64,000 bases of DNA from IMGVR_UViG_3300043446_005562:1-64000, one strand, 5' to 3'; positions 1 to 46,883 are shown, numbered from the stretch's first letter. The notes: a model not told the origin generated them from the sequence alone. Program-made: numbers and translations.

Positions 1-201
1 CCGGTACTCTTTCCAATCGTATACGGTAAAGACCTCTCCGGTTCGGGTCTCGCAGGTCCAGTCGAAATTGACCTTGTCCTCACCCGTATTATCCGAGTAC
101 TGGGGCGCGCCCAGCATTTCAATGAGGTCGTTTACTGAACACACAAAGACGGTATCGTGAAAGGAAGTGCCGCTTGCTGATTTACTTGATAGTGTTGCCA
201 T
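1..201 (-). CDS. conserved phage hypothetical protein, 3' end cut by window edge
   Basis: Hand translation from ATG at 201: MATLSSKSASGTSFHDTVF...DKVNFDWTC...VFTVYDWKEYR. Open to position 1; early promoter at 227-259. Confidence 0.75.
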   Translation of the reverse strand, partial: MATLSSKSASGTSFHDTVFVCSVNDLIEMLGAPQYSDNTGEDKVNFDWTCETRTGEVFTVYDWKEYR

Positions 202-288
202 GGTCTGATTGTTTTAAGGTTATGGAGTAAATATAAGTATTTTATTTGACACGGAAAAATTTTTATGTCAAAAGTTATTAACAATTGG

Positions 289-582
289 CTAGGCCTTGCG
301 AACCTCAACCCTTTCGATTCGGGTTAGGCTGCCGATCGGCGACCACATGGCCTCCTCAAACGAAGAGTATTTTGACCTGTCCCAGAGCCAGACCCGGCCG
401 TCGCGTTTACAGATTTCTCGAGCAGCGCGCTCGGTCAGGCTAGCCTCGGAAAGCCGGCCTTCAAATAGAGCATGCGCATATACTGTCTTAAAGGTTGCGC
501 TTACGCAGACGGGTCTCTCTGTCTCTCCTGCTCGAGAGGTAAGGAGCCAGACCTGTCTGCTTTTTCGGGTTGGACTAGGCAT
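289..582 (-). CDS. hypothetical protein (97 aa)
   Basis: ATG start, same strand as neighbours. Confidence 0.6.
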   Translation of the reverse strand: MPSPTRKSRQVWLLTSRAGETERPVCVSATFKTVYAHALFEGRLSEASLTERAAREICKRDGRVWLWDRSKYSSFEEAMWSPIGSLTRIERVEVRKA

Positions 583-685
583 TTAACTTATCTTTTTTCT
601 GGATTTAACACGCAGTAGATGCAGAAGCCTATACAGATTAGGGATATTATCGCGCACATAGATATAATTGATTACTGGATTTATA

Positions 686-937
686 TTACCCAAGTTCTTC
701 GCTTAACCTCTTAAGGTCCGCGCATTTCTCGTACTGTTCCTTCTTCTCAAAGTGGGAGATCATGGTCCAGATAGCCTGCTTCTTCTCGTCGATTGGGGCA
801 CCGTCGTGTACAACATCCCGGAATTCTCCGGCCAAGGCTTCGTAAAGCCTGTCCATGAATCCGTCGTAGTCGGTCTCTCGAAGCCGGATAAGCTCCAGCA
901 GAATATCATGGTAGTTGCGATTCTTTTTAGTTGACAT
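686..937 (-). CDS. small protein with C-terminal UvrB/UvrC (UVR)-like motif
   Basis: FEKKEQYEKCADLKR resembles the UVR motif. Confidence 0.65.
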   Translation of the reverse strand: MSTKKNRNYHDILLELIRLRETDYDGFMDRLYEALAGEFRDVVHDGAPIDEKKQAIWTMISHFEKKEQYEKCADLKRLSEELG

Positions 938-1004
938 ATCTTTATTTATACTTTTTATTCTGATTCACCCAGCGTGAATGGTATCCTCTTTATAATATAA
1001 TACT

Positions 1005-1037
1005 AAAAAAGGGGTTTCGGATTACCAAGACCCCTTT
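1005..1037 (-). terminator. intrinsic terminator
   Basis: AAAGGGGT/ACCCCTTT stem with T-run on minus strand, after gene 1056-1382. Confidence 0.6.
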
Positions 1038-1055
1038 AATAATGGATTGCATCCG

Positions 1056-1382
1056 CTATATGAATTGGGTTAGGAATCCCGTCGGCCAGCCCGCTTCGTC
1101 CATCTCAAAGTCCATGTCGATCTGAATCATGTCCGAATAGATGCTTATTTTCTGCCACCCATCCATTAGGCGGAAGCAGTTTGAGATCAATTGATCTACC
1201 GATTCGTCGGGTACAAACTCATCGTCCAGCCTGACGGATCCATCGTCCAACGTTTGGATGTCAACGTTTAGGTACTCTCGCATTATGTCTATTGCATCTT
1301 CAGCTTTAAGCTCGGCTAGATAAGCATCGACCTGGCCGAATGCTTCGGAGATTTCAATTCTGAATAATTCTGGATTTCTCAT
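1056..1382 (-). CDS. acidic hypothetical protein (108 aa)
   Basis: ATG start, followed by terminator. Confidence 0.75.
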   Translation of the reverse strand: MRNPELFRIEISEAFGQVDAYLAELKAEDAIDIMREYLNVDIQTLDDGSVRLDDEFVPDESVDQLISNCFRLMDGWQKISIYSDMIQIDMDFEMDEAGWPTGFLTQFI

Positions 1383-1562
1383 CTTTGTCTGGATTTAGGG
1401 TTTATAAAAGAACAGAATACAGGTCAACACGACCGCGATTGCTATTATCAACAGCGCGCCATTGATGAAGGCGTCTCGCTTAAGCGCTTTAACTTCTTTT
1501 TCTGAAAATTTCTTTTGCATAGTGTATAGAGTTAATTATTATTGATTGTACTATTATTTGGA

Positions 1563-1985
1563 TTAAACGTTCTCGACAAAGGCATAGTCTGCCCATGACT
1601 TGGCCCCTGCTGCACGGTAGTTGGCTTGGCTGTATAGATTAGTATTGCTCCAATCTTGATTTATGTCGCCCACCTTCATGGTTAAGAAGAGTTCAGTATC
1701 CATAAGGATTACCTTATTACCCTTACGCGCGAACACCGTCAGCCAGGAATCCGTGCCTTCGGCCTTGAATTGAATTGTTTGCAGAGCTCCCTTCTTGAAT
1801 CCGCGAAATACATCGATCGCGCGTTTCCATTCCGGCCCGCTTTGCCAATTGGCCTGCACGCCAAGATCGTCGACAACTGTCAAGAAGCCGGCCTGCACCT
1901 TAACGATTGCTCTGAACTCTCCTTTGCTAGAGCCGATGAAATCGACCTGATTGATTCCTTCTAAATTAATGATTTGGTTTTTCAT
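1563..1985 (-). CDS. hypothetical protein (140 aa)
   Basis: ATG directly behind early promoter at 2008. Confidence 0.8.
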   Translation of the reverse strand: MKNQIINLEGINQVDFIGSSKGEFRAIVKVQAGFLTVVDDLGVQANWQSGPEWKRAIDVFRGFKKGALQTIQFKAEGTDSWLTVFARKGNKVILMDTELFLTMKVGDINQDWSNTNLYSQANYRAAGAKSWADYAFVENV

Positions 1986-2060
1986 GGTTTGATTGATTTT
2001 GGTTTAAGTAAATATAATACTTTTTCTTGACACGGAAAAATTTATTTTAAAATATTTTCT

Positions 2061-2369
2061 TTAAATCCACTGTGAACCTAGATGGCTGCAGGTCGGGGAA
2101 TACTTCTCGAGCAGGCTGGCTCCAACCTGCAGCAGAAAGCCGGATGGGGTTATGCTCCTGATCGGGCTGTCCTTATCGATTACGACCGAGCCCAGCTGAT
2201 TGCCACGGCTGTCCAGGGTCAGGACGTAGCTGCCGTCTCGAACAAGCAGAAAATCCGAACAGAATCCCTGTAGCTGGGCGCTTGACGCAATTTGAGTCCA
2301 GCCAATTTCCTGACCGGACTCGTCTAGTATTTGGAGGCTAGTACCTCGCTGTATAACATTACCTATCAT
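2061..2369 (-). CDS. hypothetical protein (102 aa)
   Basis: ATGA overlap with upstream ORF. Confidence 0.7.
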   Translation of the reverse strand: MIGNVIQRGTSLQILDESGQEIGWTQIASSAQLQGFCSDFLLVRDGSYVLTLDSRGNQLGSVVIDKDSPIRSITPSGFLLQVGASLLEKYSPTCSHLGSQWI

Positions 2370-2584
2370 GCTCTTGTTTTTGAATTTTTAATACACTCGT
2401 TAAACTCTTCTTCCGACAGGTCTGGCGTATCTTCCGTAACAAGCTTTAGTAGGGTTGCGGCTTCTATCTGTGTTACTAGGGAGTCCCTATCCACCCGGCC
2501 CGCGAATGGATCGCCTTCGGAAAATAGAATCTCAACTGCGGTCTCGGCCCAGAAGCGGGCTTCAAATTGGGTTGTCATTATCAT
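2366..2584 (-). CDS. hypothetical protein (72 aa)
   Basis: ATGA overlaps on both sides, coupled to sigma gene. Confidence 0.7.
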   Translation of the reverse strand: MIMTTQFEARFWAETAVEILFSEGDPFAGRVDRDSLVTQIEAATLLKLVTEDTPDLSEEEFNECIKNSKTRA

Positions 2585-3300
2585 ACGCCTACCTCCTTTC
2601 TCATTTTAGCGCGGGCAACCTTTAGCGCGCGATTAACTTCGACTGGGGTTTTACCAACGGCTTCCGCAACCTCCTTGGTGGAGAGCCCGTCTCCAACGAG
2701 ACCGTAGAACAGCTCCACGATTTGACGTTCGGTTGGTTTAAGAACGTTAAGTACTCTACGGAGTATTCTGGTTTGGTCCTCACTTTCGAATGGGTCTTGG
2801 AAATCTTCTCTCAACAAGAGATCGCCGACCGTATCCTCACCGTCCTCGCCGATTGGGCGGTCCAATTGGATGTTACGCATGTTGATGCTTTCGCCTGCCA
2901 TCTTGCGTTTGTAAAGATCGTATTCCTGATTTACCGGAATTCGAACGGTACGACCGATCTCGCAAAGAGCAAGGTTTAATCTCTTACGTATCCAGAACTG
3001 GGCGTAGGTAATAAACTTCACGTCTTTATCTGGGGTAAAACGACGAGCGGCTTCGATAAGACCCGCATTACCCTCTTGAATTAGGTCATCGATGGAAAGA
3101 CCCATACCGATAAACTTATTCGCAAGCGTAACAACGAATTTTAGATTTGCTTGTACTAATTGCTGTAGCGCGCGATCGTCTCCCTTTTGGATACGTGCTG
3201 CTAATTGAAGCTCCTCAGCTTTGGTGAGAGGAACTGCTACTGATGCAATATCCTTGAAGTATTGCGGTAGGCTTTCTGATGTTTCGAATCTTTTCGACAT
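2581..3300 (-). CDS. RNA polymerase sigma-70 factor, RpoD-like, lacking region 1.1
   Basis: Region 1.2 (SLPQYFKDI), region 2 (LVQANLKFVV, DDLIQEGNAGLIEAARRF, FITYAQFWIR), region 4 HTH (LKPTERQIVELFYGL...STKEVAEAVG). Confidence 0.93.
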   Translation of the reverse strand: MSKRFETSESLPQYFKDIASVAVPLTKAEELQLAARIQKGDDRALQQLVQANLKFVVTLANKFIGMGLSIDDLIQEGNAGLIEAARRFTPDKDVKFITYAQFWIRKRLNLALCEIGRTVRIPVNQEYDLYKRKMAGESINMRNIQLDRPIGEDGEDTVGDLLLREDFQDPFESEDQTRILRRVLNVLKPTERQIVELFYGLVGDGLSTKEVAEAVGKTPVEVNRALKVARAKMRKEVGV

Positions 3301-3392
3301 GGTTGATTTGGTTTAGTTGATTATTATAATGTAAATATAAACAATATTTTTGACAAGTAAAAACTTTTTGTGAATTATTTTCAAAAAAGTTA

Positions 3393-3611
3393 TTAACGTT
3401 TTTTAGACCATTCGGCAATTACTTCACAACCATAAAATCCATGGGAGCCAAAGCCAAAGGAGTCTCCGGGTTTTGGCGAACAAAGCACAACCATTTGATT
3501 CCACCTAGATTTCTTTTCTTCGCTAAAGGATTCCTTTGCTTGGTCAAGATTGTCAAATAGATTGTAAGAGTCTCCATCCTCGGAGCAAGAAATTAAAAGA
3601 TACATTTTCAT
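3393..3611 (-). CDS. hypothetical protein (72 aa)
   Basis: Own early promoter; stop codon lies inside GTTATTAAC box. Confidence 0.7.
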   Translation of the reverse strand: MKMYLLISCSEDGDSYNLFDNLDQAKESFSEEKKSRWNQMVVLCSPKPGDSFGFGSHGFYGCEVIAEWSKKR

Positions 3612-3701
3612 AGTTTATTAGTTTAATTGATTAATATAAGTAAATATAACAATAATACTTGACAGTAAAAAACTTTTTGTGAATTATTTTCAAAAAAGTT
3701 A

Positions 3702-3941
3702 TTAACATACGAACCACTGTCCGCAGTTACGGCACTCAGAAGCATCGTCGACTCTAAAAGCCCTGATTATCCATGACCACTTGTCCGAGTTAGTTGGTTC
3801 CTGTGGGTCCGCATAGACCTCTCTTGCCTCGCAGTGAGGGCAACATAGACCCTGTGGATTTGGTTCTGAACTACCGGTTCTTTCGATTATTAATCGCTTC
3901 ATTTCCGGATTTTTGATTTCTGATAGGTTTGATGTCTGCAT
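3702..3941 (-). CDS. zinc-ribbon protein
   Basis: CPHC...CRNC; own promoter; stop inside box. Confidence 0.75.
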   Translation of the reverse strand: MQTSNLSEIKNPEMKRLIIERTGSSEPNPQGLCCPHCEAREVYADPQEPTNSDKWSWIIRAFRVDDASECRNCGQWFVC

Positions 3942-4002
3942 GATTGATTTGATTGGTTAGTAAGTAAATATAACAATAATTCTTGACACGAAAAAATTTA
4001 TT

Positions 4003-4353
4003 TTACAGAAAATTATTCAATTTGATTTTACGTTTCTCCGTGTACTTCATACGGCCGAAATTCTTGAAACGAAATAGGAAGTCCATTTCACGAAGCACGT
4101 CCCTACCGTAGGTCTTTGAGAGTCTGGTCTCGATAAGTTCAAGCTTCTTATTCCATTTATGAATTGACTGATTACCTTCAAGCATTGCTTTACGTAGAAC
4201 ATCAACACTAAAGCCAGGCCTCTCGCAGTACATCTCCTCTCTCCAGTCAGAGATGTTGTCTGCCATTGCATCAATTTGGCGAGTCAATTGATATACTTCC
4301 TTTACTTGTACATTGCTTGCGTAGAGAGTTGGTATCTTTTTTCTTTTTCCCAT
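4003..4353 (-). CDS. basic hypothetical protein (116 aa)
   Basis: Own early promoter at 4377. Confidence 0.75.
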   Translation of the reverse strand: MGKRKKIPTLYASNVQVKEVYQLTRQIDAMADNISDWREEMYCERPGFSVDVLRKAMLEGNQSIHKWNKKLELIETRLSKTYGRDVLREMDFLFRFKNFGRMKYTEKRKIKLNNFL

Positions 4354-4445
4354 AGTTTTAGTTTTTTTAGGTTTAAGTAAACATAAACAATTACTTTGAC
4401 ACGGAAAAATTTTTGTGAATTATTTTTCAAAAATTATTAACAGCG

Positions 4446-4469
4446 AAAAGGGGTCCTACCACGGACCCC
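4446..4469 (-). terminator. intrinsic terminator
   Basis: GGGGTCC/GGACCCC 7-bp stem plus T-run on minus strand. Confidence 0.7.
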
Positions 4470-4503
4470 AGTTCTATCAATCAACCAAGTAATATTTTAT
4501 TTT

Positions 4504-4785
4504 CTAATTTAGATGGATACCTGTCTCTCGCAACAGGTTCTCTAACTCTATCTCTGAGTCTGACATGCCCTGTTGACGCTTGACCTGCTTCATGCAGAAC
4601 TGCATTAACAGTTGAGTAAGCTCATGTGTGCTGCGCTCGTCCTGGGTTGCGGACAGGAGGGTTATTAATCCATTTCCGATTAGGATGAGCTCGGGGTCAG
4701 AGGTCTTTAATCCGCCCGCGATTAGGCTGTTGGCTAGGGTTTCGAGCTCGGCTCGGGTTTTCTCTCTTATCTCTTTTCTGTTCAT
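4504..4785 (-). CDS. hypothetical protein (93 aa)
   Basis: ATG, helical composition. Confidence 0.75.
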   Translation of the reverse strand: MNRKEIREKTRAELETLANSLIAGGLKTSDPELILIGNGLITLLSATQDERSTHELTQLLMQFCMKQVKRQQGMSDSEIELENLLRETGIHLN

Positions 4786-4814
4786 GATCGATTGGTTATT
4801 GGTTAGGATTTATA

Positions 4815-5009
4815 TTACTCTTTTCCGATCGTGATGGTCTTGTTCATTGCATAGATTCTTTCCCAGAACTCGTTGTAACCAAGCTCCTGCTCTGGATTAA
4901 CCGTGCTCTGGGCTCTCGCGCCGCCGCCATAGGTTAAGTCAATGGGTTCTCCGATTGATGGATCGAAACCTTGTAGTCTGTCGATTAGGGATTTAAAGAT
5001 TTTCTTCAT
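4815..5009 (-). CDS. hypothetical protein (64 aa)
   Basis: ATG with A-rich leader. Confidence 0.65.
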   Translation of the reverse strand: MKKIFKSLIDRLQGFDPSIGEPIDLTYGGGARAQSTVNPEQELGYNEFWERIYAMNKTITIGKE

Positions 5010-5103
5010 GGTCTATTTGGATTTAATTGGTTACTTGATTAGATGCCAGCCGGGCCCTGTGCTTGGGCCTGGTCCTGGACTTGATGGGCTGTTTGGGTCT
5101 GCT

Positions 5104-5316
5104 TCATTTGGCTTTAGGAATTAAACGAATTAGCGATTGAGTTAATAGACCCGGATCTTCGTCGTACCGGCCGCGAGACCAGCCGTCTACCAGACTCTTT
5201 AGGTCTTTGGAATTCTTGGTTGAGATGCCGGATTCCTCGGCGGACTTGATCGTCTCGGCCGGAATATCCATCCACGTTTTCATTTCTCGGAGCATTGATG
5301 CTAGGGTTGTTGTCAT
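5104..5316 (-). CDS. hypothetical protein (70 aa)
   Basis: Own early promoter at 5339. Confidence 0.7.
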   Translation of the reverse strand: MTTTLASMLREMKTWMDIPAETIKSAEESGISTKNSKDLKSLVDGWSRGRYDEDPGLLTQSLIRLIPKAK

Positions 5317-5369
5317 AGTTTTTGGTTTGATTGATTAGTTAAATATAAGCATTTTAATTGACACGGGAA

Positions 5370-5933
5370 AATAAAGTTATTAACAGTTACTAGGGAGTCC
5401 GGCTAGACCCTTCGCCGCCAAGAACTGGATGCGCTCGATCCGGGCCTGCAATTCCGGCAGGTCCTGTGCCATGCTGTGCAGTATCTTTAGATCGCGTTTG
5501 CTCATGCTTGGCGCGGCCATGGCCAGCGCAACGTCAACTGGATTACCAAGCCGCATGGCCTCGAGAACAGGAGCAGAGCCGGCTGGGGAGATTGATCCTG
5601 GAATCTGGCAGTTTGCGCCGAATTCAAAGCGCCAAAAGCCGGGTCTGTTCCAGCTGTCGATGAGGTTGGCGTCCAGCATCTGACGTACTCGGCTTATGTG
5701 CTTGCTTGTCGTACGGCTGTACTTGCCATTTGTCACGAGCCGCGGTCTGCGGCCGAGCTCCTTTGCAAAGAACTCTACTGTTGCAACATGGGTTTCGTAG
5801 CTTATAACCCTGTCCCCGACTAGGAACAGGTTCTGCGCGATCTTTAGGGTTGGTTTGAGTTTCATGGTTTAAATATAATATTTTTTGTTGAGACCTGACA
5901 ATAAAGTTATTAACAGTTACTAGGGAGTCCGGC
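5370..5933. repeat. perfect 34-bp direct repeat (5370-5403, 5900-5933) flanking one gene-plus-promoter cassette
   Basis: AATAAAGTTATTAACAGTTACTAGGGAGTCCGGC read at both positions. Confidence 0.95.
5380..5865 (-). CDS. hypothetical protein (161 aa)
   Basis: ISYETHVA...YSRTTSKHI motif common in phage early proteins; C-terminus encoded by the direct repeat. Confidence 0.75.
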   Translation of the reverse strand: MKLKPTLKIAQNLFLVGDRVISYETHVATVEFFAKELGRRPRLVTNGKYSRTTSKHISRVRQMLDANLIDSWNRPGFWRFEFGANCQIPGSISPAGSAPVLEAMRLGNPVDVALAMAAPSMSKRDLKILHSMAQDLPELQARIERIQFLAAKGLAGLPSNC

Positions 5934-5938
5934 CGAAT

Positions 5939-6460
5939 CTATACAGATTCAACCGGTGCGAATACTTCATTGACATTAAAATCTCCTGAACGGCTGCTGT
6001 TGAGCATGCGCTCCAGGCAGACAGGCCCGAGAGCGGTGTGGATCGATTCCGGATGGGTAAGCGGTAATCCGCAAGCGCAGCATCTGCCCTCGTGGAATAG
6101 ACCTACACGACCGCGTAGAATCTCTGGATTCTTGATCGCTGACACGACCCAGCCTAGGGCGCGAGCTAAGCGTGAATCCGGTCTGACATTGCGGCCGAGC
6201 TTGACGTGCATTGTCTCGGCAAAGAGAGTGCCGGCGAACTGCGAGCTTTGTCGGCCGTCGTTAAGCAGGGAAATATCAACGTAATAGATCGGCAGCTTGA
6301 TCTTGCGATCCTGCTTGTCGCGCAGCTGCTTGATCTTCACGGTCATGTGGGTGCCTGCCGCAAGGTTACGGAACGTAAGCACCGCACGGCCGGCTAACGC
6401 GAGCTTGGGTAGGGCAAGCGGGTTAAGGTTCGGGCGGGGAATGTTTCTGTGGTTTCTCAT
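5939..6460 (-). CDS. DUF6011-like zinc-binding protein (173 aa)
   Basis: HEGRCCACGLPLTHPESIHTALGPVC; start moved to ATG at 6460 behind promoter 6484. Confidence 0.7.
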   Translation of the reverse strand: MRNHRNIPRPNLNPLALPKLALAGRAVLTFRNLAAGTHMTVKIKQLRDKQDRKIKLPIYYVDISLLNDGRQSSQFAGTLFAETMHVKLGRNVRPDSRLARALGWVVSAIKNPEILRGRVGLFHEGRCCACGLPLTHPESIHTALGPVCLERMLNSSRSGDFNVNEVFAPVESV

Positions 6461-6666
6461 GGTAGATTGGTTTAATTGATTAAGTAAATATAACCAATTA
6501 CTTTCAAATAAAAAAATTTTTTGTGAATTATTTTTCAAAAGTTATTAACAAAGTTATGGACACTGGCGGACTGAAGTGCAGGTCGGAGTATACCCTCTGC
6601 GATCCGGTTGGGGATCGAACCTTAAAAACCGGGCGCTGGGCCCGGTCCTATGGATTATCCGGCTCG

Positions 6667-6810
6667 TTAGAACTCGAAGGCTGAGGTTGAGGAGTAGTTG
6701 CCGGTTACAAGGTTCGCGATTGCGAACAGGATTCCTGATACTGCGATTGCTGCGACGCATACGGTCCAGACTTGCATTACGCGTAGGGCGATGATTTGTG
6801 GTTTGCTCAT
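6667..6810 (-). CDS. small membrane protein (47 aa, not in ORF track)
   Basis: MSKPQIIALRVMQVWTVCVAAIAVSGILFAIANLVTGNYSSTSAFEF; own promoter at 6840. Confidence 0.65.
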   Translation of the reverse strand: MSKPQIIALRVMQVWTVCVAAIAVSGILFAIANLVTGNYSSTSAFEF

Positions 6811-6883
6811 GGTAGATTTGATTGATTGGTTAAACATAGGTAAATATAATAATTATCTTTGAGACCTGAAAACTTTTTGTGAA

Positions 6884-7054
6884 TTATTTTCCAAAAGTTA
6901 TTAACATTTTTGCGGACATGCTGAAGAGCGCGGCGAAGGTAAATGCCAGAATCGGCAAGGTTTCTAGAGGTTGGGGAGTTACGACTAGGGCGATAAGACC
7001 CGCAGCGCTCGCAAAGAACACTGTTGCTAGGGCAAGGATTTCTAGTTTTTTCAT
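6884..7054 (-). CDS. small two-helix membrane protein (56 aa, not in ORF track)
   Basis: MKKLEILALATVFFASAAGLIALVVTPQPLETLPILAFTFAALFSMSAKMLITFGK; own promoter at 7078. Confidence 0.65.
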   Translation of the reverse strand: MKKLEILALATVFFASAAGLIALVVTPQPLETLPILAFTFAALFSMSAKMLITFGK

Positions 7055-7138
7055 GGTGTATAAATTAATTGGTTAAAGCTAATATAACCAAAAAACCCCA
7101 GACTAAAAAATCTGGGGTCATTTATTTTTCAAAAGTTA

Positions 7139-7429
7139 TTAACATTTCTGGCCGCAGTCCCGGCAACGCCAAAGCGTGAGACCGCTTTCGTGACGAACGG
7201 CCGCGTACTGATTCTTGTGCTGACACTCCGCTTCCTGCTCCGCATAGAGCTTTAAGCAGGCCGGACAGCCGATCGTCTCGAGACCGGAGAGCCTGGCCCA
7301 GTTGTTGCTTAGAGCTGGCGTGCCGCACAGGATTCCGTGTCCGCTTTTGTAGATGTGGGCTGTGTTACTCCACACGTTGCCCTTGTTGCCGAAGATGGAG
7401 AAGTTGGGTTTAAGGTCTTTTACTTGCAT
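7139..7429 (-). CDS. Cys/His-rich zinc-finger protein
   Basis: H..CG, CPAC, C.H, CRDC; own promoter; stop inside box. Confidence 0.75.
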   Translation of the reverse strand: MQVKDLKPNFSIFGNKGNVWSNTAHIYKSGHGILCGTPALSNNWARLSGLETIGCPACLKLYAEQEAECQHKNQYAAVRHESGLTLWRCRDCGQKC

Positions 7430-7511
7430 ATCGATCTTTTAATTGGTTAAGTAAATATAACAAAAAAACCCCAAACAAAAAAATCTGGGGTCATTTTCTT
7501 TTAAACTTTTT

Positions 7512-7598
7512 CTAGAGGCAATGCATAAGCAAGCCGTAAAGGCCAATGCCTGCCAAAAAGTAGATCAGGTTATTCAACCACTTTGGATATCTGTCCAT
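7512..7598 (-). CDS. possible 28-aa membrane peptide
   Basis: MDRYPKWLNNLIYFLAGIGLYGLLMHCL after an A-rich leader. Confidence 0.4.
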   Translation of the reverse strand: MDRYPKWLNNLIYFLAGIGLYGLLMHCL

Positions 7599-7626
7599 GC
7601 TTCTCGTGTTAGGTGTTAATAATGTC

Positions 7627-7917
7627 TTATTCAAAGAGACCTTCGGTCAGCTGCATGAAGTAATCGAAATAGAAGCCGTAGCCCGCCGCTCTTAGAGCCT
7701 TGCTTATCTGATGGGCAATGTGGCCTCTTGGCTCAGTATCGAATATCTCGCCGTGCTTCAAGGAGATCTTCTTCATGCCCTGCTTAATGAGATCCTGAAC
7801 CTCAACCCCTGTCACGCGACGTTGGCTCATTATCTTTTTGGTTATCTTGTCTACTAGACTTTGGCAGGCTCTTTCTCCTGCGTCTGAAAACATCTCGTAA
7901 TAGGGTTTCTTTTCCAT
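7627..7917 (-). CDS. hypothetical protein (96 aa)
   Basis: ATG; TATAAT-like element upstream. Confidence 0.75.
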   Translation of the reverse strand: MEKKPYYEMFSDAGERACQSLVDKITKKIMSQRRVTGVEVQDLIKQGMKKISLKHGEIFDTEPRGHIAHQISKALRAAGYGFYFDYFMQLTEGLFE

Positions 7918-7957
7918 GGTCTAATGTGGTTTGGTTAATATTATATTACCATAGGGG

Positions 7958-8119
7958 CTAGGCCTCGGGTCCGATGAGGTCCCAGGCAGTTTCGCCGGTC
8001 GGCTGGCCCCTGAAGGTAATTTCGTAGTTGGGGTCCTGGCCGCTCTCGACGATATCGGCTAAGAGGGCCGGTAGGGTTGGGAATTCCTTTTGGTAGTAGG
8101 CGCAGTCTAATGAATACAT
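7958..8119 (-). CDS. hypothetical protein (53 aa, not in ORF track)
   Basis: MYSLDCAYYQKEFPTLPALLADIVESGQDPNYEITFRGQPTGETAWDLIGPEA; promoter at 8145. Confidence 0.7.
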   Translation of the reverse strand: MYSLDCAYYQKEFPTLPALLADIVESGQDPNYEITFRGQPTGETAWDLIGPEA

Positions 8120-8196
8120 ATAAAAAGATTTAATTGGTTAGGATACAAATATAACCAAAATACTTGACACGGAAAAATTTATTTTAACCAATTTCT

Positions 8197-8724
8197 CTAG
8201 CTGAATACAAGGACCCCATCGTCAGCTGCAAGCTCAAACGCCTTTAGAAAATCAAGGTAAATTTCCAGGAACCAGCCGTTATCCTCGCGTTCAGGATCGC
8301 CGACGTACGCCTCGGCCCTGTGCTTGTATTTAACAAAGTCTTGATAGAGACTCTTTGCAACGGGTCCGCCTATCGCGCCATCGCAGTCCGAATGGTTTAT
8401 TAGACCAAAGAACGGCGCGACCCGCCATTCGGTCTCGTTGTTCCATACCCCTTCGGGCCCGACTCCAAGCATGGTCTGGCTCAGCACCCTACGCCATTGG
8501 TTGTAGCCCGAGTAGGAGCCCGCCCTGAAGGAGAAGCTCTCGCTTTCCGCGGTTGCGTACCAGGTTCCGGGCCTCAAGCCCTTGAATGCCTGCTCATCGA
8601 ACGTTTCGATCGTTATTACCTCTTCGCCGCGTTCGGATAAGCCAAGCTCTTCAAGCCTCTTTTCGCGTGCGCCGAACTCGTGTTCCTCCTTTAGCTTGGA
8701 GTAGGCGTAGATATCTAGTCCCAT
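8197..8724 (-). CDS. conserved phage hypothetical protein (175 aa)
   Basis: MGLDIYAY...GSYSGYNQWRR...LINHSDCDG motifs. Confidence 0.8.
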   Translation of the reverse strand: MGLDIYAYSKLKEEHEFGAREKRLEELGLSERGEEVITIETFDEQAFKGLRPGTWYATAESESFSFRAGSYSGYNQWRRVLSQTMLGVGPEGVWNNETEWRVAPFFGLINHSDCDGAIGGPVAKSLYQDFVKYKHRAEAYVGDPEREDNGWFLEIYLDFLKAFELAADDGVLVFS

Positions 8725-46213: not shown

Positions 46214-46693
46214 TTAACGAAGTCTATCTAAAATTATTCGTTGAGATGCTGCAACATTTGCATAGGCCTGATCAATATCAACAAAACCGGCCCAATCCAA
46301 CTCTTCCTCTTGTAGATTCTGCTTTGGCACTCGAAGTCCATCGAGACCAATTTCCGCTGGATCAGATATTCTACACACAAGATAATGAATGTTATTTCTG
46401 AACTTTTTACCGCTCCAAACCTCAGCAGTTTGAATTGCCGGCTCTACCTGATCGGGTCTAATTTTTAATCCGGTCTCTTCAAAAGTTTCCCGGAAAGCGG
46501 CCGCCTCCGGCGATTCGCCCTCTTCCATTTTACCCTTGGGAATTCCCATTACGGGCTTGACCCAGCTTGAATTGGTTGGATGAACCAGCAAAATCATTTT
46601 TTTACCAGTGTCGACTTGAGTATAGACAATTGCAATGCCAGCTGAATCGCTTCTCTTTTTTGGAGCCGCGAAATTTTCAAAATCTTTAATCAT
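46214..46693 (-). CDS. Nudix hydrolase
   Basis: GKMEEGESPEAAAFRETFEETG Nudix box. Confidence 0.93.
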   Translation of the reverse strand: MIKDFENFAAPKKRSDSAGIAIVYTQVDTGKKMILLVHPTNSSWVKPVMGIPKGKMEEGESPEAAAFRETFEETGLKIRPDQVEPAIQTAEVWSGKKFRNNIHYLVCRISDPAEIGLDGLRVPKQNLQEEELDWAGFVDIDQAYANVAASQRIILDRLR

Positions 46694-46883
46694 TAGAGTT
46701 TGAACTATTAAGTGATTGACGGTATTTCGCCTTTTTGATTTCGTCTCGACGCTGCACGCTAGGTTTTTTAAATTCTCGACGTTCGCGTAATTCAGAAAGA
46801 GTCTTGGTCTTGTCGAATTTCTTCTTTAGGACCTTTAGCGCCCTATCAATTGAACCAATTTCCTTAACGTTGACTATTAGCAT
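46686..46883 (-). CDS. rpsU: 30S ribosomal protein bS21
   Basis: MLIVNVKEIGSIDRALKVLKKKFDKTKTLSELRERREFKKPSVQRR..IKKAKY; Bacteroidota-like. Confidence 0.93.
   Translation of the reverse strand: MLIVNVKEIGSIDRALKVLKKKFDKTKTLSELRERREFKKPSVQRRDEIKKAKYRQSLNSSNSND

Follow-up and report, generated by a model that had tools for sequence, protein, structure and literature searches.

The early promoters of a jumbo phage of Bacteroidota (IMGVR_UViG_3300043446_005562) carry a near-invariant 9-base element, GTTAATAAC on the coding strand, at whole-helical-turn distances upstream of a Bacteroidota-type -7 box. We found that a degenerate form of this element, TGTTRAWAA, sits at the same distances upstream of gyrB and dnaN in Flavobacteriales, taken here as the host order, so the phage appears to borrow a host regulator, possibly the replication initiator DnaA. 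Our literature searches found no description of this element.

Anatomy of the early promoter cassettes

We analyzed a 64,000-nucleotide stretch of the phage genome (the window), for which the initial annotation had claimed that DnaA-box-like elements lie 37, 37, 47, 56, 57, 57, 57, 58 and 58 bp from the promoter anchor, in steps of about 10 bp. This observation is correct. TTATTAAC occurs 13 times in the window against 3.2 expected, and 0 of 100 shuffles reach 13. Nine copies lie on one strand between 275 and 7143. All genes in 1-8200 are on the minus strand, where the motif reads GTTAATAAC, with 8 exact copies plus the one-base variant GTTAATAAT, while only 3 more copies occur in the remaining 245 kb of the genome. 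The nine copies in 1-8200 belong to 9 of the 13 promoter cassettes in this region.

We then measured the offset from the G of each motif to the TA of the -7-like box TTATATTTA and recovered exactly the list of distances given above (all features are on the minus strand). The copy at 274-282 lies 47 nt upstream of the box at 228-236, in the promoter of ORF 1-201. The copies at 3389-3397 and 3698-3706 both have an offset of 58, to boxes at 3332-3340, the promoter of a sigma-70-family gene (2581-3300), and at 3641-3649. The variant GTTAATAAT at 4433-4441, just after a terminator hairpin at 4450-4469, has an offset of 56 to the box TTATGTTTA at 4378-4386. Two short-form copies, at 5376-5384 and 5906-5914, have an offset of 37 to boxes at 5340-5348 and 5870-5878, the latter being near-leaderless since the ATG follows 12 nt after the TA. 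The remaining copies, at 6541-6549, 6897-6905 and 7135-7143, have an offset of 57 to boxes at 6485-6493, 6841-6849 and 7079-7087 (TTATATTAG). In the last case, which was assigned to its box by hand, a strong terminator hairpin (7094-7119) lies between motif and box. In 4 of the 9 copies, those at 3389, 3698, 5376 and 7135, the first TAA of GT-TAA-TAA-C is the stop codon of the upstream ORF (3393-3611, 3702-3941, 5380-5865 and 7139-7429, respectively), which the initial annotation had missed. The other four cassettes lack an intact 9-mer. There is no 9-mer upstream of the boxes at 2009-2017 and 7452-7460, the latter lying directly after a terminator at 7467-7492, and the upstream motif is decayed for the boxes at 3965-3973 (ATTGAATAATTTT) and 8146-8154 (TTATATTTG, with motif ATTGGTTAAAATAA). 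Within this region, the quantization rests on only three independent arrangements, since the two 37-nt copies share 18 further upstream bases and are duplicates, and the 56-58 copies are one cassette type. It is confirmed independently in unrelated phage contigs and in host genomes.

The boxes conform in sequence to the Bacteroidota primary-sigma promoter, defined by a -7 TAnnTTTG box about 12 to 5 nt before the start site and a T-rich -33 element, TTTG, about 19-21 nt upstream, without a Shine-Dalgarno sequence (PMC6847099, also the source of the numbering T-12, A-11 ... G-5). The box is TAtaTTTA, with A in place of the final G, in 10 of the 13 cassettes, and TAtgTTTA, TAtaTTAG or canonical TAtaTTTG in the other three, while it is TAtaTTTG in related Chryseobacterium phage cassettes. 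TTTt lies at -35 to -32 and the leaders are A-rich without GGAGG.

The initial annotation had also described an inverted partner, TGTGAATTA, at the 37-38 position of the long-form (56-58) cassettes. TGTGAATTA occurs 6 times in the window against 0.85 expected, and on the coding strand TAATTCACA is found in 5 of the 6 long-form cassettes, at 3369-3377, 3678-3686, 6522-6530 and 6878-6886 (offset 38) and at 4414-4422 (offset 37). However, it is specific to this phage and is not a conserved element. CACA occupies that place in only 2 of 43 non-redundant long-form cassettes, and the sequence varies in the closest relatives.

The phased element in other phages and in Flavobacteriales

Next, we determined whether this architecture extends beyond this phage. 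In 233 non-redundant sites from more than 100 unrelated IMG/VR contigs, the -7 box falls at 37/38, 45-48, 55-59, 67-70 or 78-80 nt, with troughs between, in 129 sites, against 10 on the mirror side. Single-base variants of the 9-mer and the opposite orientation show about 5% background association, against 130 of 237 for the exact 9-mer, in which G, C and the central base are invariant.

We then searched host genomes. In 401 Flavobacteriales genomes, there are 586 matches of GTTAATAAC-N28-58-TANNTTTG. Among 150 of these, 32 fall at 46/47 and 73 at 56-59, with 1-5 per other offset in our tally from the coordinates. The downstream genes include DnaN, GyrB, ParA, thymidine kinase and CarB, but also transketolase, a GFO/IDH/MocA oxidoreductase, biotin carboxylase, SecDF and a 180-aa unknown with three boxes, which are not classic DnaA targets. 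A survey across the order showed that TGTTRAWAA sits at the phased offsets upstream of gyrB in 24 of 30 genomes and dnaN in 13 of 30, but upstream of dnaA in 0 of 29, recA in 0 of 30 and tdk in 1 of 27, with 0 for a reversed-motif control. About 58 other promoters were without it. In the 35 host sites, T at -1 is invariant although it was not imposed by the search, and +8 is free, so the core is exactly a 9-mer.

In the other orientation, the host core reads TTWTYAACA, which matches the universal DnaA box TTWTNCACA at 8 of 9 positions in the same frame, with A in place of C at position 6, while the phage site TTATTAACA matches E. coli TTATCCACA at 7 of 9. The DnaA-box consensus is TTATNCACA, with the 5' TTA read by Arg399 (PMC4588119). 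In Thermoanaerobacter tengcongensis, the consensus is TTATCNACA, which allows A at position 6, and an oligonucleotide with TGTTGATAA next to TGTGGATAA is bound by DnaA at 8 nM (PMC1888806). All 30 Flavobacteriales DnaA proteins examined carry GGKDHATV where E. coli has DHTTV, a change at a specificity residue (Thr435). However, new-type boxes also precede dnaN in genomes whose DnaA keeps DHTT or DHST, so residue and box do not covary cleanly. We also looked for origin-like arrays. Three same-orientation boxes within 90 nt occur in only 2 of 121 genomes, and both are promoters. There are no boxes near dnaA or mnmG, where no oriC was located either, so absence at the origin is not proven, and the one cluster in a complete genome lies in a 160-bp promoter region.

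Candidate factors and the role of the element

Our preferred explanation is that these elements are upstream activator-type sites in early promoters read by the host's primary RNA polymerase. These promoters carry the Bacteroidota -33 TTTT and -7 TAnnTTT elements. Taking the T of the box as -12, the motif is centered at about -45, -55, -65, -76 or -87, always on the same face of the helix. In this view, the sites are near-invariant copies of a host cis-element, a host protein binds them, and the phage uses it to drive early genes according to that protein's activity. The analysis establishes the anatomy, the phasing, the invariance, the spread among phages and the presence and gene specificity of the element in hosts, whereas binding itself, activation rather than repression and the identity of the protein are inferred. 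We are fairly confident that this is a host-factor site co-opted by phage early promoters. DnaA is the leading candidate because of the 9-mer frame of the host core, but the whole statement including DnaA remains tentative, slightly less likely than not. The box is absent from the 300 nt upstream of dnaA in 29 genomes, although DnaA autoregulation is common, and the phage copies are invariant and carry conserved flanks (AAATT...CTTT) that host sites lack, which DnaA recognition alone does not explain. The interpretation in the initial annotation, that host DnaA or a phage factor binds in phase with RNA polymerase, is therefore partly supported: a protein-binding site in helical phase with RNA polymerase and a host-encoded factor are supported, and coupling of early transcription to host replication state is a reasonable reading, whereas the inverted partner is not a conserved element and there is no evidence here for its alternative that about 14 boxes sequester DnaA like datA and stall host replication.

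Strict orientation and helical phasing fit a dedicated transcription factor equally well. The site might be bound by an uncharacterized Bacteroidota regulator of gyrB, dnaN and other growth-linked genes, acting as a class-I-type activator, which would be in line with the gene-specific, order-wide conservation, the lack of origin-like clusters, the absence at dnaA and the non-classic targets. This is possible but less likely, since no candidate protein is known and the match to the DnaA box would then be a coincidence. That the element is an optimized UP element, with RNA polymerase alpha-CTD directly binding GTTAATAAC-TTTTT-GAAAA and phages having selected the strongest version, is unlikely. 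AATAACTTTTT does match the E. coli distal UP subsite AWWWWWTTTTT at 10 of 11 positions, the 47-nt class places it at about -56 to -46, where the E. coli subsite lies, and alpha-CTD sites tolerate displacement by whole turns. However, position is compatible only for the 37 and 47 classes, the element is restricted to particular host genes whereas UP-like tracts should be a graded, general feature, its invariant G, C and central base are unlike minor-groove A/T recognition, and Chryseobacterium phages keep the TTTTTGAAAA tract but replace the 9-mer.

A phage-encoded early protein, either an activator of delayed-early promoters or a shut-off repressor, is similarly unlikely. The motif is far more frequent and more uniform in phage contigs than in hosts, and two small early protein families (83 aa at 686-937 and about 100 aa at 1-201) co-occur with it, including in three jumbo relatives but not in two motif-less cultured jumbo phages. 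Yet models of both families show no DNA-binding fold, no HTH protein was found among 20 early ORFs, and the same core at the same offsets in host gyrB and dnaN promoters needs a host protein. We consider it still less likely that the main role is sequestration, in which the roughly nine boxes per genome, multiplied by phage replication, would titrate DnaA or another factor away from host promoters or the origin. There are eight exact copies in the first 7.2 kb here, 9 in the first 10.5 kb of one jumbo relative and 7 within 8 kb in another, and the host targets are replication genes. However, the nine sites are spread over 6.9 kb, one per promoter at a phased distance, which titration does not need, rather than packed in a compact cluster like a datA locus. 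In addition, small phages carry only 1-3 copies per 10 kb, and nothing suggests a hydrolysis-promoting architecture. Least likely is that the motif has no binding role and is the conserved edge of a mobile promoter cassette, maintained by recombination, that also supplies tandem stop codons. Although four copies end the upstream ORF, the 18-bp extension is shared by two cassettes in different reading frames, and metatranscriptome contigs join different cassettes (286>3373, 3147>3659 and 3954>3330), recombination explains neither phasing at five discrete offsets with diverged spacers nor the element at orthologous host promoters whose spacers have diverged completely.

Gene regulation in Bacteroidota and the transcription programs of their phages are poorly known. 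These findings define a promoter architecture shared by more than a hundred uncultured phage contigs, a conserved regulatory site (inferred from sequence) in front of gyrB and dnaN across a bacterial order, and a direct link between the two. A bolder possibility, which we hold even more tentatively, is that Flavobacteriales DnaA recognizes a shifted box, TTWTYAACA, which would entail a preference for TGTTAATAA or TGTTGATAA over scrambled DNA, and acts as a phase-dependent activator of gyrB and dnaN. Many unrelated Bacteroidota phages, marine and freshwater, from 30 kb to 290 kb, would then have wired their early promoters to this DnaA signal, timing infection to the host's replication status, and replicating phage DNA could in turn drain DnaA from host targets. 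If the binder is DnaA, this would show a lineage-specific DnaA box, a role for DnaA as a phased activator and a widespread phage strategy of reading, and possibly depleting, the host's replication initiator. Either way, the 15-base phage consensus is a ready-made bait for identifying the protein and a candidate strong-promoter part for Flavobacterium genetics.

Comparison with known systems

The closest parallel is with DnaA boxes at DnaA-regulated promoters, including DnaA stimulation of phage lambda pR, and with the T. tengcongensis boxes TTATCNACA (PMC1888806). The element is likewise an asymmetric 9-mer in the same frame, keeps the 5' TTW and 3' ACA, and sits upstream of replication genes (dnaN, gyrB and parA), with pairs occurring 12 or 21-22 bp apart. 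It differs in having A rather than C at position 6 throughout, in not being found at dnaA promoters or in origin-like arrays, in being locked in orientation and helical phase to a promoter and, in the phage version, in its invariance and extra conserved flanks. In early promoters of Bacillus phages phi29 and Nf, Spo0A boxes similarly build binding sites for a host master regulator into the promoter, so that infection follows the host's physiological state (PMC2731898). However, Spo0A represses and leads to spore entrapment, whereas here the phased position (-45 to -87) suggests activation by a regulator yet to be identified.

The rrnB P1 UP element with phased Fis sites, and T4 early promoters with extended upstream consensus, share with these cassettes A/T tracts upstream of the -35 equivalent in strong promoters plus a factor site that works, here by inference from position, only on one helical face, with phage promoters lying closer to consensus than host promoters. 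In contrast, the 9-mer is gene specific in the host and invariant at G/C positions, and the polymerase is of the Bacteroidota -33/-7 type. By position alone, the element behaves as a class-I-type activator site, and in class I CRP-dependent promoters (sites at -61.5, -72.5, -82.5 and -92.5), activator sites are likewise tolerated only at whole-turn displacements, but here the site is a 9-mer used in one orientation rather than a 22-bp symmetric dimer site, and a -55 position is also used. Finally, as in the PeSL promoter and stem-loop cassettes of T4-like phages, repeated early promoter modules flank small ORFs, with 13 cassettes and 3 terminator hairpins here, some fused to terminators, and signs of cassette-mediated rearrangement in contigs from relatives, although without direct evidence of mobility. 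PeSL, however, has no phased far-upstream factor site shared with host genes.

Early cassettes and the phased 9-mer in the window

We first examined the genomic context of the 9-mer. The window is the first 64 kb of a virus record that is 252,618 bp long (41% G+C, linear, estimated 93% complete), and near-identical DNA occurs in freshwater, reservoir, estuary, and river metagenomes, while a search for near-identical cultured phages found none. All genes in 1-8200 lie on the minus strand and are about two dozen small ORFs, of which only a sigma-70-family protein (2581-3300) and a DUF6011 protein (5939-6460) match Pfam. The sigma-70-family factor (regions 1.2, 2, 3, and 4), which presumably directs middle or late transcription, is itself preceded by a motif-bearing early cassette. 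Thirteen intergenic cassettes, which occur nowhere else in the 252 kb, end in TTATATTTA or a one- or two-base variant. This matches the Bacteroidota -7 element TAnnTTTG (consensus and numbering from PMC6847099), with a T-run where the -33 element lies and A-rich leaders without a Shine-Dalgarno sequence. A scan for sigma-70-type promoters was at background level, and no Rfam family matched. Several features fit a Bacteroidota host, without narrowing it further: a ribosomal protein S21 gene (46686-46883, minus strand; PF01165, E 7.6e-14), a family that appears in 17 of the motif-bearing loci; related cassettes in Chryseobacterium jumbo phages, whose box is the canonical TATATTTG; and a full cassette on a contig binned with a Cryomorphaceae genome. 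Outside the window, at genome positions 75657-91666, two adjacent giant ORFs of 2,810 and 2,514 aa are related to each other and to proteins in 27 motif-bearing loci, and are probably fiber or surface proteins.

Next, we tested the observation made in the initial annotation that DnaA-box-like elements lie at helically quantized distances from these early promoters, and found that it holds. TTATTAAC is overrepresented (13 against 3.2 expected), as is TGTGAATTA (6 against 0.85). On the coding strand, the former reads GTTAATAAC, and its G lies 47, 58, 58, 56, 37, 37, 57, 57, and 57 nt upstream of the TA of the -7 box, which is the list originally reported, while TAATTCACA sits at 37-38 in five of the six long forms (the last copy was measured by hand). 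Within the window, this amounts to only three independent arrangements because the two 37-nt copies are duplicates and the long forms are one cassette type. An 18-bp block (CCGGACTCCCTAGTAACT on the minus strand) precedes both short-form cassettes (5385-5402 and 5915-5932), is read in two different frames by the two upstream ORFs, and recurs before a cassette without the 9-mer in a 271-kb relative (L187). The ATG of ORF 5380-5865 lies 12 nt after the TA of its -7 box (5865-5878), so this mRNA would be leaderless or nearly so. Strong intrinsic terminators are fused to promoters at 7094-7119 and 7467-7492 (minus strand), and also at 4450-4469: the hairpin occupies the -33 region and its T-run abuts the -7 box. 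Many cassettes in other phages do the same, with the -33 T-run in the hairpin loop.

Phasing of the 9-mer in other phages

We wondered how general this spacing might be. A scan of IMG/VR with GTTAATAACTTTTNGAAAA returned at least 119 stretches, in contigs from 4 kb to 294 kb, nearly all of which had TTATATTTA about 57 nt downstream. To remove any bias on spacing, we rescanned with ATTGTTAATAACTTT alone, pooled all GTTAATAAC sites from the retrieved loci, and dereplicated them at 70% identity over the next 100 nt, leaving 233 sites. A TAnnTTT[GA] box starts at 37/38 (9 sites), 45-48 (34), 55-59 (85, mode 57), 67-70 (7), or 78-80 (2) nt, with 3-4 sites in each trough. In total, 129 of 233 sites are phased, against 10 of 233 on the mirror side. 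Every single-base variant, including the opposite orientation GTTATTAAC, shows only about 5% association, against 130 of 237 for the exact 9-mer. The conserved block is aAATT-GTTAATAAC-TTTt..AAAA, and with T-12 numbering the motif center falls at about -45, -55, -65, -76, and -87. The helical quantization is therefore real and general, and it cannot be explained by repeated insertion of one 10-bp unit because the spacers differ. In contrast, the inverted partner proposed in the initial annotation does not generalize: CACA occupies that place in 2 of 43 nonredundant long forms and a relaxed DnaA box in 1 of 43, while close relatives carry TAAATCACA, TAATTAGCC, TAATTGTGA, and other sequences there.

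Among cultured phages, Chryseobacterium phages MA9V-1/-2 share the core cassette but not the 9-mer, and Tenacibaculum pT24 and MA9V-1 carry the 9-mer only at chance level. Cassettes of MA9V-1 (record 38838-62918) share AACTTTTTGAAAATAA...TTTTC...GTCAAA...TATATTTG with the window, but carry GC(A/T)AAAAC, sometimes as an inverted repeat, where the 9-mer would be, which suggests a different upstream factor in that lineage. Related phages in river samples join different genes at the cassettes (joints 286>3373, 3147>3659, and 3954>3330 in metatranscriptome contigs, which were too fragmentary to map transcript ends), and a 38-bp promoter core (3964-4001) occurs in contigs with entirely different flanks, so the cassettes appear to act as recombination points.

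The element in Flavobacteriales promoters

We next asked whether the element is specific to phages. Searches with the phage-flanked 19-mer and 14-mer showed that these are rare in bacterial genomes, without enrichment and not followed by promoters, and the raw 9-mer looked underrepresented, which at first suggested a phage-specific element. This reading was overturned when spacing to a -7 box was scored because host sites lack the phage flanks. In a Fluviicola genome, 4 intergenic copies out of 40 had a -7 box at exactly +47 or +58. A search of 401 Flavobacteriales genomes for GTTAATAAC-N28-58-TANNTTTG gave 586 matches; in 150 of these, 32 lie at 46/47 and 73 at 56-59, with 1-5 at each other offset. 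Several are orthologous promoters conserved over 7-12 genomes while their spacers have diverged, and the genes behind them include DnaN, GyrB, ParA, thymidine kinase, CarB, transketolase, biotin carboxylase, SecDF, and a GFO/IDH/MocA oxidoreductase. A conserved 56-aa gene (METT..LQEEIDNL...HIDC.GCG) keeps the full phage-type 19-mer GTTAATAACTTTTTGAAAA 58 nt upstream of its -7 box in four species (Crocinitomicaceae/Fluviicola genomes, loci L252, L260, L272, and L275). The densest arrangement of boxes belongs to a conserved 180-aa host protein of unknown function (loci L471, 96-635, and L520), with three at 59, 47, and 26 nt in Fluviicola and repeated AATAAC units in eleven other genomes; it might be a key member of the regulon or the regulator itself.

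We then sampled promoters without reference to the motif, taking 30 genomes of the order for each gene. GTT[AG]A[AT]AA at a phased offset from a -7 box precedes gyrB in 24 of 30, dnaN in 13 of 30, dnaA in 0 of 29, recA in 0 of 30, and tdk in 1 of 27, while the reversed motif scores 0 throughout. In these 35 host sites, the base before the G is T in all 35, although the search did not require it, and the base after the last A is free. The host core is therefore exactly TGTTRAWAA. A host protein must recognize it, and the phages carry its near-invariant, flank-extended form (the sequence AAATTGTTAATAACTTT would serve as bait for the binder). We found no published description of the element.

Candidate proteins and an inferred mode of action

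Which protein might this be? Read on the other strand, the host core is TTWTYAACA, whereas the general DnaA box is TTATNCACA or TTWTNCACA, whose 5' TTA is read by Arg399 in the minor groove (PMC4588119). The two differ only at position 6, which is variable in Thermoanaerobacter tengcongensis, where the consensus is TTATCNACA and an oligonucleotide with TGTTGATAA and TGTGGATAA 3 bp apart is bound by DnaA at 8 nM (PMC1888806). TGTTGATAA is the commonest form at Flavobacteriales gyrB promoters. All 30 DnaA proteins of the order examined (dnaA loci L522-L551) carry GGKDHATV in the DNA-recognition helix where E. coli has DHTTV, and Thr435 is a specificity residue. Pairs of boxes 12 or 21-22 bp apart occur in hosts and phages, and gyrB, dnaN, and parA are the genes that surround DnaA-box clusters in many bacteria. 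Other results speak against DnaA. Neither canonical nor variant boxes lie within 300 nt upstream of dnaA in these genomes, where dnaA and dnaN are unlinked, and arrays of three boxes are almost absent, the two found being promoters. Our searches for oriC did not find an origin: canonical TTATCCACA is not clustered or enriched, nothing was found next to dnaA or mnmG, and a 3-box cluster in a complete genome lies in a short promoter region (an apparent strand skew in the list of boxes is probably a listing artifact). When the DnaA signature residue was compared with box type across the phylum, new-type boxes were also found to precede dnaN in genomes with DHTT or DHST DnaA.

The strict promoter phasing and the extra conserved flanks in phages also speak against DnaA, as they would suit a dedicated transcription factor. 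We regard DnaA as the leading but only tentative candidate and another host factor as somewhat less likely, while each of the remaining readings appears very unlikely. A plain UP element does not fit the gene specificity or the invariant G and C. A phage-encoded binder does not fit the host sites, and 20 early ORFs gave only a sigma factor and DUF6011. Two small early protein families of unknown function, at 686-937 (83 aa, with an EEYEKC...LKKL motif) and 1-201 (about 100 aa, with GTS..G...FTIYDWK), both on the minus strand, are shared with 50 and 21 of 119 motif-bearing loci from distant phages, but neither has a PHROG or Pfam match, and their AlphaFold models (pLDDT 82 and 77) had no significant PDB match and no DNA-binding fold. 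An RNA hairpin or weak terminator in the long form reaches -7 kcal/mol in two copies but is absent in others, and so is not conserved. Cassette recombination appears real in relatives but cannot create phasing at diverged host promoters, and a role as a stop codon is secondary since only 4 of the 9 copies end the upstream ORF.

Taken together, the interpretation in the initial annotation, that host DnaA or a phage factor binds in phase with RNA polymerase, is partly supported: a host, replication-linked factor acting in phase with the polymerase is supported, DnaA is plausible but unproven, and the inverted partner and the analogy to sequestration by datA are not supported. While the phasing, its occurrence across phages, and the host sites were established by our analysis, DnaA binding, activation, and the following mode of action are inferred. 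The host primary polymerase would read the cassettes as soon as the DNA enters the cell, the cluster lying at or near the genome end in this record and in two jumbo relatives. Because the same factor would drive gyrB and dnaN, early phage transcription would be strongest in cells that are preparing or conducting replication. Titration of the factor by replicating phage genomes is possible but has no evidence here. In this view, the 9-mer is a modulator and not part of the core promoter, since 4 of the 13 cassettes lack it (two carry decayed copies). The factor, bound one to five turns upstream of the -33 element on one face of the helix, would contact the polymerase and raise initiation as class I activators do, and the T- and A-tracts lying between it and the core resemble UP subsites.
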